This document shows, piece by piece, positions 38,217 through 41,200 of a DNA stretch of 64,000 bases (its first letter is position 1; every line of letters begins with the position of its first letter). A program made the position numbers and the translations under genes. The DNA lies in the NCBI GenBank assembly GCA_964199315.1, contig OZ116704.1, positions 29,388,001-29,452,000 on the forward strand, given 5' to 3'. This DNA is from Orbicella franksi. Its lineage: Eukaryota. The notes below the pieces were generated by a model. It searched no databases. It was not told where the DNA came from and worked only from the letters and a program-made list of their open reading frames with translations.

Positions 38217-41200
38217 CTTGGCTTAGTTGACAGACTTTTTGCAGCGACTGTACTTTTGTTGTTCACTTTTCTCGCTTTGTATCGACAAAGAAAAAGTGTT
38301 TACTGATCAACTCAATTAAATACATAGGGTGAGAGTTCAATGAGGTTATGTTTTATCGTCAAAAATTAACATTTCTATGCCTAGTTTAATATATAGGAAA
38401 TTTGTTGGAAATAGGGCGCAATGGACAATTGCTATTTCATGAATGCAATGTTCAATGATTGATTCATTGCAACATCTGGGTTTTGTTGAAAATACTTTGC
38501 TCTGCAGTGCTACATGCAATTAATAATGAAAAATACCAAAAAAAAAAAAAACTTTAATGCATTTGATCAGGTATCTTAACAGCACTCTGATGTTACATAG
38601 GAAGAGATTAGCCTTAAATTCGGAAGGCCGAAAATTTTCGTTTCATGGTTGTTCTACGAGTTTCGGATTAATTTCCGTAGAAATAGCGTCCGGAAATAAA
38701 TGATGGTGTCCTATTTTAGCTTTTGAAGCAAACAAAGTTCGCACGACTTTTAGCAAGGGAAAAAAACGGAGAAAATTTTATCATTTTGCATGTTTGTCGC
38801 TATTTTACCCTATCGATGATCTCCAACGCAGAATAACGAAAGCCTCTCTTCATTTGTGCTAGCAGTATTTATTCGCAACATCTCAATGAACAATAATAAT
38901 GTCTTTTCTATACTCCGAGAAAGTGATCCTTCCGTTTGAAGATCATTTAATTCAGAAACACCATAGTCTGATGCCATAAAACAACACTACAAGCATATGT
39001 CAGCAGCGACTTTGGGCAATGGACAAACAGCTCAATATGGCGGCCGCCGAACACAACTGCGAATGGAGAATATAGAAGAACCAATTTTATCATTTTGCAT
39101 GTTTGTCGCTATTTTACTCTATCGATGATCTCCAACGCAGAATAACGAAAGCCTCGCTTCATTGGTGCTAGCAGTATTTATTCGCAACATCTCAATGAAC
39201 AATAATAGTGTCTTTCCTGTACTCCGAGAAAGTGATCCTTCCGTTTGAAGCTCATTTAATTCACCATAAAACACCATAGTCCATGAAACACCATAGTCTG
39301 ATGCCATAAAACAACACTACAAGCATACCTCAGCAGCGACTTTGATTGGTTCGGCTGGTCTAATACGCAGAATAGAGTAAAATTTCTTACGAGAAAGAAA
39401 CTTCAATGCCATTCATAAGCAACAATTTCTAACTCCAGATAATTAACCATGCGCTTACAGTCAGTCTACCAGGTAAGAGAGTGAAGCCCCCCTATAGGCC
39501 TTATTGACCTAAGGTAATCTATCTGAGTGACTCAGTTCCTCCAATGATGTTACTTGCGCGATGCGTGGACAAGCCAAGCCACTTTCTCGAAACTACCTGA
39601 GACGAAATGGCGGGAAATGTGTCGAAAAGTCAGTTTATGTGTTTTGATTTTCAAAAGACGCTTCATAGCAGAGATGTTTTTTTAGTGTACTCCCAGCCGT
39701 GGTCTTCTCTTGCTACCAACTTATTCTCAAAAGTTATCGACCGTGCGCCCGTTACTTCGAATTTTGCGAAACGTCAGAAAACAGGCATCATATCAATGAA
39801 ACAATGCTAAAAAGTCCTGAATATTTAAAACAAAACGAACCGTATAAAAGTTAAGTTTTGTCACAGAAAAAAAGAGTTATGTTAAAGTCCTTTATAAACA
39901 GAATTAAGTTAAAACAAAAAACAAAAAAAAAACAATCTGGAATGATCAATAAACTCCTGTTGTAGAAATTTATAACCATCGACTTTGAACAACGGCACTT
40001 TTGTTTTTCACGCCCTTCCCACCGCTAAAAAAAATGATTTGGCATTTAGTGCTGCTGTGCCAACTGGGGACATTACATCAAGGTTACTTTTTGGAACATG
40101 TGACTTTCACGCGAAAACAAAAAAAAAAAGAACTTTAGGGTTATTTTAGAAAGCCAAGTACATTCCAGGGACAATTGACTCGACAAGGTTGTTGCGCCAC
40201 AGGTAAAACGAACGAGCTGACTAGGGGAAATCTGTTTTTACTACAGTTAAACGACAGAAATTTGCCAAAGAAAATGGTGTTATCATTTCTGTTTCCTTTC
40301 GCTCTAAATACCTCACGGAATGTTTTCAATCGGCCACGCGTGAGAACTATGCATATGGCGACAGCTGAAATACATCCTTTTTTTAACAAGAATATGTTTC
40401 ATAAGAATATCGAGGCTGAAATTGCGAAATTTTAAGAATATTCTTAAATAAAACCCGAGGCTGGTATTTTGAAAAGAATGTCATTTTGTGTTTTTAAAAT
40501 TGGTAAATACAGTACAATTATATGTTTTTAACTAAGCCCTACAAAATTGTCCCTTTCTCTAAGCGCCAAAATTAGTCAAAAACAACAGAAACAGCACTAG
40601 CCGTATGCTGGATGCTAACAACATTTCTGTAAGAAGTTATCTGTGCCATATGCAGGCTGGCTCCAAAATTTCTTCAAGGCAGCCATCACTGTCATGATAG
40701 GACACTACATAATCTGACGTTGTGTCGGCATAGTTCACTTTGTATTCCTATAATCTAAGAATGTTCAAAAGAATGCTGATTTTCAGCCTAAAATCGCAGA
40801 AAAATAACAATTAATATTCAGCCTGGGCAGGAAAAACAGTACTATTATATAAAAAAAAAAACCGGCCGTGTATTTGGGAGACTGAGTCCTTCATGGGATC
40901 GATATGACAAAAGTCACTGAAAAAAGAATGAGACTTCTCTCGGCTGTACAGCAATGATCATGATTAGAATCGGCTTCTTCGTCAAAGATCGATAGATTGG
41001 TCTTTACTTTAACACGGTCAATAACAGCACCAGTTGTTAATGCAAAGCTTGAAAACTTTCAGAAAATGCTACATAACTGTTTTACGTGTCTATCATGGTT
41101 GCTGGGTGGGAATTCGACATATATATGAGATGTTGATCTGCTTTTAAACTGTCTTGCAGAGCCAATATTGCTCAAGGGAGCCGACATTTCTCATCTAATT

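Follow-up and report, generated by a model that had tools for sequence, protein, structure and literature searches.

Rearrangements attributed to fork stalling and template switching or to microhomology-mediated break-induced replication (FoSTeS/MMBIR) include duplications that carry an inverted templated insert, an example being the duplication-inverted triplication-duplication type (DUP-TRP/INV-DUP). Two reports on PLP1 rearrangements describe microhomeology, that is, imperfect microhomology, at the junctions (PMC6902434, PMC11293582). Synthesis-dependent microhomology-mediated end joining (SD-MMEJ) and polymerase theta produce small templated insertions whose donors usually lie within about 200 bp, and snap-back priming on the same strand gives rise to inverted, microhomology-flanked inserts, scars of this kind accumulating in germlines (PMC7407515). 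The same review cites rice, where naturally occurring insertions of 10-1000 bp form tandem duplications (PMC7407515). In primates, template switching creates hairpins and microRNAs (miRNAs), the stem-loops of ~35 bp being made from adjacent sequence (Monttinen, Frilander and Loytynoja 2023, PMC10710096). Here we describe a structure of related appearance in a 64,000-nucleotide window on contig 7 of the 497-Mb assembly of the stony coral Orbicella franksi, where three tandem, intronless, minus-strand copies of a G protein-coupled receptor (GPCR) gene lie between 34.4 and 48 kb. Upstream of two of the three copies a segment, A, is duplicated, and between its two copies lies X, an inverted copy of the end of the receptor coding sequence. 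This A-X-A structure, a small-scale analogue of duplications with an inverted templated insert, is an unusually clear and datable example of a known mutation class. The best explanation, in our judgement with good probability, is a single-step template switch, primed by microhomology, that left a neutral scar in the gene's 5' flank.

At copy 1 (37077-38216, minus strand), the proximal copy of the duplicated upstream segment, A1a, spans 38774-39014 (241 nt) and lies 560-800 nt upstream of the ATG, and the distal copy, A1b, spans 39083-39344 (262 nt), the ancestral sequence continuing from 39345. The start-to-start spacing of the two is 309 nt. An earlier note, made from the letters of the window, had described a repeat of ~240 bp, and both copies were found within a few bases of where it had placed them, but that length applies to A1a and not to A1b, which is longer through a 21-nt internal tandem duplication (39264-39284). 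The same 21-nt duplication is present at 43750-43770, in the copy-2 counterpart of A1b, and is absent from A1a, from A3 (the corresponding segment at copy 3), and from every outgroup. A3 lacks 24 nt that are present here in A1a and the outgroups, and the occurrence of both changes at one stretch implies that this stretch is prone to slippage.

Insert X1 (39006-39088, plus strand; 83 nt), as delimited by repeat finding, alignment, and genome search, is an inverted copy of the last 27 GPCR codons. It is the reverse complement of 37081-37163, the 3' end of the copy-1 coding sequence on the minus strand, with 89% identity to that end and 92-93% identity to the ends of copies 2 and 3. The position and translation that the earlier note had assigned to this fragment were upheld by alignment, and both of the microhomologies it had named, GC.ACTTTG and TTTT, were found at the joints. 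The part of the insert that is gene derived beyond doubt is 39015-39083, with the left joint microhomology at 39006-39014 and the right joint at 39083-39088. At the left joint, GCGACTTTG in insert X1, or GCAACTTTG in its counterpart at copy 2, is to be set against GCAACTTTG in the gene, giving a common GC(G/A)ACTTTG in which 6 nt are perfect and 8-9 of the 9 positions match. At the right joint, TTTT (39085-39088) is common to both sides, a perfect match of 4 nt that becomes 5 of 6 (A.TTTT) if the A at 39083 is counted. Both joints fall precisely at the ends of the duplicated segment.

Repeat finding revealed the same structure at copy 2 and a different one at copy 3, as the earlier note had stated. 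Copy 2 is preceded by A2a (43262-43500), the counterpart of A1a; by insert X2 (43492-43574, plus strand), which is 99% identical to X1, the one difference lying in the left joint; and by A2b (43569-43830), which is 100% identical to A1b. Copy 3, the sole member of the array without A-X-A, has a single, undivided segment, A3 (47378-47598), with no insert.

The resemblance of the insert to the gene is far beyond chance, the 83-mer matching the gene ends in a whole-genome search with E-values of 3e-23 to 6e-26. Nor is the structure an error of assembly, a possibility that is excluded for practical purposes because all 10 of the 10 31-mers sampled across 38985-39115 are present in 14 DNA runs (at least eight studies and three organism labels, with several coral metagenomes among them), because an independent DNA run covers the region and contains no joint that skips the insert, and because the two assembly copies of A-X-A differ slightly between themselves.

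The direction of change could be read from sequences inside and outside the array. Outside it, segment A occurs once, ~600 nt upstream of the closest paralogue (locus L016 on contig 10; 64% protein identity), in single copy and without an insert. The orthologous loci of other corals (L044, L045, L046, L048, and L049; ~80% nucleotide identity) have one A each, and no inverted gene end was found upstream in any of these five. On these comparisons, segment A is ordinary upstream sequence of the receptor lineage and belongs to no repeat family. Because copy 3, the contig-10 paralogue, and the coral orthologues all carry one A and no insert, we regard A-X-A as derived, with a single origin in the lineage of the copy-1 flank. 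When the outgroups are used to polarize the 9 differences between A1a and A1b (3.7%), 4 derived substitutions fall in A1a and 5 in A1b, per 241 nt. A3 has the ancestral base at every reliably aligned site that separates A1a from A1b. A T-to-C change common to A1a and A1b, which arose before the event and created the ACTTTG of the left joint, is found in neither A3 nor the outgroups. We also considered whether the single A of copy 3 might be a secondary collapse of A-X-A, which is unlikely given that A3 is ancestral at the diagnostic sites and lacks the shared T-to-C change.

The source of the insert is local. In the 497-Mb assembly the 83-mer occurs in only five places, the two inserts and the three gene ends, all of them in the array, and the whole-genome DNA search returned no further copy down to 89% identity. 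A protein search found the C-terminal tail in no other paralogue, the closest of which (64% identity) aligns only to residue 365. The earlier note had observed that none of the three local gene ends is identical to the insert, and this is so (7-9 mismatches over 83 nt in each comparison, joint bases included). It had gone on to propose a fourth paralogue as donor, to be recognized by an exact match in the genome, and here the searches gave nothing beyond the array's own five copies. A related metagenome contig (L047) is 91% identical to the insert, no closer than the local copies, and a 41-nt insert-specific word had no match in JGI metagenome contigs. Alignment with the orthologues divides the 6 differences between the insert and the gene consensus into 4 private changes, 1 ancestral C, and 1 difference in the right joint. 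Three of the 4 private changes are non-synonymous in the old reading frame and 1 is synonymous, as expected where there is no coding constraint. The ancestral C (in CTGCGA) is kept in the insert, and G stands in its place in all three local genes and in L047. The insert also contains an array-specific extra codon (CGGCCGCCG) that other species lack, which implies that it derives from the local lineage. On this reading the insert preserves an older state of a local gene end. The G common to the gene ends fits the homogenization seen elsewhere in the array, and back-mutation in the insert is also possible.

A simple series of steps would generate this anatomy. A 3' end that had copied the plus strand as far as 39014 would leave its template and anneal through ACTTTG to the plus strand at a GPCR gene end, the template being either the same gene, 1.84 kb behind (37081-37163, the nearest candidate), or the next gene, 2.47 kb ahead (41562-41644, the 3' end of the copy-2 coding sequence on the minus strand). 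After about 70-80 nt had been copied in the opposite direction, it would return through TTTT to a point 241 nt behind that of departure. The outcome would be A, an inverted gene fragment, and A again, with a net gain of 309 nt, the event having struck one of two older paralogues after their split. Three features of FoSTeS/MMBIR-type events are present here, namely, microhomology at the joints, a nearby inverted template, and a 241-nt gain that abuts both ends of the insert. The earlier note had named FoSTeS/MMBIR outright. What stands of that proposal is a derived, single, microhomology-primed event with two switches, the order of which we infer; as to pathway, FoSTeS/MMBIR and synthesis-dependent end joining with snap-back synthesis are not separable by sequence.

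Several observations weigh against a neutral template switch from a local donor. The distance to the template (1.8-2.5 kb) and the length of the insert exceed those of usual end-joining insertions and fall below those of classical FoSTeS events. The 4 private substitutions in 69 unambiguous nucleotides are to be compared with an expectation of ~1.3 at the A1a/A1b rate (Poisson p ~0.04, on small numbers), an excess compatible with error-prone synthesis, with a slightly different donor allele, or with chance. The presence of the ancestral C in the insert requires later homogenization of the gene ends, back-mutation, or another donor. Finally, neutrality, although the most likely condition of A-X-A, is assumed rather than demonstrated.

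The private excess and the ancestral C, a base found in no local copy, are also what favours a donor that was a fourth paralogue or a divergent allele, since lost or missing from the assembly, as does the fact that the insert is unlike every local gene end. We think such a donor unlikely, as the genome search found no further copy to 89% identity, no other paralogue has the C-terminal tail, and L047 is no nearer to the insert than the local copies are. Moreover, the differences can be explained by age and by later homogenization of the coding sequences, those of copies 1 and 3 being 99-100% identical within diverged flanks. The slippage-prone character of the region, with its 21-nt duplication in A1b and its deletion in A3, might instead suggest two events, a slippage duplication of A followed by insertion of a gene fragment at the joint, or the reverse. 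Against this, both ends of the insert match the boundaries of the duplication to the base, each with its own microhomology, and no intermediate state (A-A without X, or X without the duplication) was seen in copy 3, the contig-10 paralogue, or the five orthologous loci, so that we consider a two-event origin very improbable. Capture of the gene fragment by a mobile element, or an artefact of assembly, has nothing specific in its favour except high-copy repeats nearby (39550-39683), and is hardly credible. A is ancestrally single copy and conserved in position in the paralogue and the orthologues, neither A nor X is a repeat family, and neither terminal repeats nor a separate target-site duplication can be seen at the joints, which are accounted for by the duplication of A and the microhomologies. 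An artefact would have to have arisen twice with small differences and to recur in 14 DNA runs. When a mobile-element origin was pursued through the genome, A and X were found elsewhere only as one upstream homologue of A, and it was rejected.

In plants, small-RNA loci are reportedly born from inverted duplications of their target genes, a proposal said to go back to Allen et al. in 2004. For Hexacorallia, a model has been put forward in which inverted duplications of coding genes yield hairpins, then AGO2-loaded endogenous small interfering RNAs (endo-siRNAs), and eventually miRNAs (Fridrich et al. 2020, PMC7713132). Our locus resembles such loci in that its insert is an inverted coding copy of the would-be target, in a hexacoral, with 89-93% complementarity. 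It differs from them in having one arm only, the gene itself being the other, and the resemblance is one of raw material only.

The functional alternative to a neutral scar is that the insert, lying in a long 5' untranslated region (5' UTR) of transcripts begun upstream of A1b, pairs with the coding 3' end of the same or a sister mRNA to give ~80 bp of double-stranded RNA (dsRNA) that feeds Dicer and AGO2, as endo-siRNAs, or ADAR, and dampens the receptor. This we regard as a possibility rather than a finding, and an improbable one. The more specific form of the idea, in which both GPCR genes, intact and constrained, have 83 nt of antisense sequence in the 5' UTR that folds each mRNA upon itself into ~80 bp of intramolecular dsRNA that is diced or edited, seems slightly more doubtful still. 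In its favour, the duplex is predicted to have an energy of -134 kcal/mol for copy 1 and -143 kcal/mol for copy 2, compared with -34 +/- 5 for shuffled sequences, and when a 2.4-kb minus-strand transcript is folded, its minimum-energy structure includes 77 of the insert-gene pairs (77-80 pairs overall), although such stability would apply only if both arms sit in one minus-strand transcript. Two polyA RNA libraries (X39 and X40) contain every word sampled from the insert and its two joints, but RNA libraries can carry DNA, and these word matches give neither the strand nor the start of a transcript. In RNA run X1 (a sequencing run, not the insert), contigs flank A-X-A at 38256-38773 (depth 15.5) and 39319-39441 (depth 24-30), against a far-upstream background of 3-8, but no contig covers 38774-39318. 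Read counts on the 4-kb locus were 0 and 2 in two raw polyA runs, where the gene may simply be silent, so that they provide no test. In the orthologue contigs L048 and L049, colinearity extends through the coding sequence and more than 1 kb upstream of it, and both genes with A-X-A are intact and constrained. On the other side, the insert has evolved at least as fast as the neutral flanks, no compensatory change keeps the pairing, and two private changes in the copy-1 gene end are uncompensated in the insert, a pattern of substitution in which the pairing gives no sign of constraint. The 171 nt around the insert fold worse than shuffled sequences (z +1.85), which speaks against a local hairpin; the loop would span 1.84 kb; and a comparison with Rfam gave no match. 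Coding use of the insert on the plus strand was likewise considered and dismissed, the insert region having no plus-strand open reading frame of at least 80 amino acids and the private changes being mostly non-synonymous. A CCAAT box just distal of A1b was rejected as a promoter marker, as copies 1-3 and L044 have it but L048 and L049 read CGAAT instead.

If the one-step template switch is accepted as the origin of A-X-A, its closest relatives are the complex rearrangements of the FoSTeS/MMBIR type. It shares with them a gain of copy together with an inverted, nearby-templated segment, short perfect or imperfect homology at the joints, two switches in one event, and a possible excess of point changes in the newly made piece. 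The imperfect microhomology at its joints resembles the microhomeology described for PLP1 rearrangements (PMC6902434). Unlike these rearrangements, the coral scar measures hundreds of bases, not kilobases to megabases, and is old and apparently fixed, not a de novo disease allele. With SD-MMEJ and polymerase theta it has in common a templated inverted insert flanked by primer-like microhomology, but an insert of 69-83 nt with its template 1.8-2.5 kb away lies outside the usual range (PMC7407515), and the 241-nt tandem duplication would in addition need staggered ends or a sister template. The hairpin-making template switches of primates (PMC10710096) offer a third comparison, also involving a replication-linked switch to the opposite strand that creates ready-made complementarity in one step, possibly in a transcribed region. 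In A-X-A, however, the arms are 1.84 kb apart, the new arm forms no local hairpin, and a tandem duplication accompanies it.

The array itself has a mosaic make-up. Copies 1 and 2 have 5' flanks that are 99-100% identical, copies 2 and 3 agree at 97-99% in their 3' flanks, and the outer flanks differ by 5-10%. Coding sequence 3 matches coding sequence 1 at 99-100% over much of its length, the middle included, inside diverged flanks, and coding sequence 2 is the outlier, with a synonymous divergence (dS) of 0.092 from copy 1. Since the 5' flanks of copies 1 and 2 are nearly identical while their coding sequences stand at this dS, A-X-A probably came to copy 2 later, by unequal crossing-over or a similar event. 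The simplest history for the mosaic would begin with two old paralogues, continue with unequal crossing-over close to the coding sequence's 5' end, yielding a third copy and a second altered flank, this one before copy 2, and end with conversion of copy 3 by copy 1. Divergence is 3.7% between A1a and A1b, ~9% between the old paralogues, and no more than 1% between the two altered flanks, so that the insert event would date between the split of the old paralogues and the crossover, that is, before the present three-copy array.

On this reading A-X-A represents a base-resolved, well-polarized two-switch copying error in a cnidarian germline, whose ancestral state is kept threefold, by a sister copy, by a paralogue, and by orthologues, and whose later spread, probably by unequal crossing-over, is visible. 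It adds evidence that microhomology-mediated template switching shapes coral gene families, and it is useful as a marker for reconstructing the growth of the receptor array, in which the insert, as an older gene 3' end, reveals the later homogenization of the coding copies. It also places a segment antisense to the receptor coding end upstream of two intact genes. Were the insert to be part of receptor mRNA and to yield small RNAs, the locus would offer a rare view of a target-derived small-RNA locus at its birth in an animal, and a natural, datable first step on the proposed hexacorallian route from inverted target duplication through endo-siRNA to miRNA.

The two genes that carry A-X-A are intact and constrained. 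Copy 1 encodes an intact rhodopsin-class receptor of 379 amino acids (Pfam 7tm_1) in a single coding exon, and copy 2 (41558-42697, minus strand) encodes an intact protein of the same length that is 93% identical to it, the ratio of nonsynonymous to synonymous divergence (dN/dS) being 0.36. Against Pfam PF00001 (7tm_1) they score 95.6 and 92.0 bits, respectively, over profile positions 2-260 of 260, where the curated cut-off is 30.5 bits. Exact-protein look-ups for copies 1 and 2 in public assemblies returned no record. Copy 3 (45767-46825, minus strand) is a pseudogene, with a 1-nt frameshift near the N terminus, caused by loss of 1 nt in a run of T near codon 17, and a deletion of ~78 nt that takes out the seventh transmembrane (TM7) region. 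At the contig-10 paralogue locus (L016:2611-3479), the upstream 900 nt share several blocks, 75-85% identical, with the upstream region of the array. The persistence of such alignment at a paralogue with only 64% protein identity suggests constraint on the 5' flank, as a promoter or a long 5' UTR.

A second inverted fragment of a receptor's own coding sequence was seen in an orthologue. L044 (ENA ERZ26858540; gene at 10001-11137, plus strand) carries at 8304-8414 an independent inverted piece of ~100-111 nt from the middle of its coding sequence, from the region of transmembrane segment 5 and intracellular loop 3 (TM5/ICL3), and it matches 10557-10654 of that gene at 86%. The piece sits just distal to a conserved upstream block, ~1.6 kb before the ATG, and neither L045, L046, nor L048 has it, nor does the window. 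Its presence hints at a recurrent process; self-comparison of 30 paralogue loci detected no other inverted own-coding fragment.

Two repeats in the surroundings of the array complete the picture. Between A-X-A and the next gene, 39550-39683 reaches a word depth of 5613 in a DNA run, compared with about 100-200 nearby, which makes a high-copy repeat probable. An inverted repeat of 77 nt (82%) joins 36266-36342, in the copy-1 3' flank beside a long run of A, with 47842-47918, far upstream of copy 3; direct copies of the 36266-36342 repeat are found at 40813 and 45018, and the repeat may represent a short interspersed element's tail.

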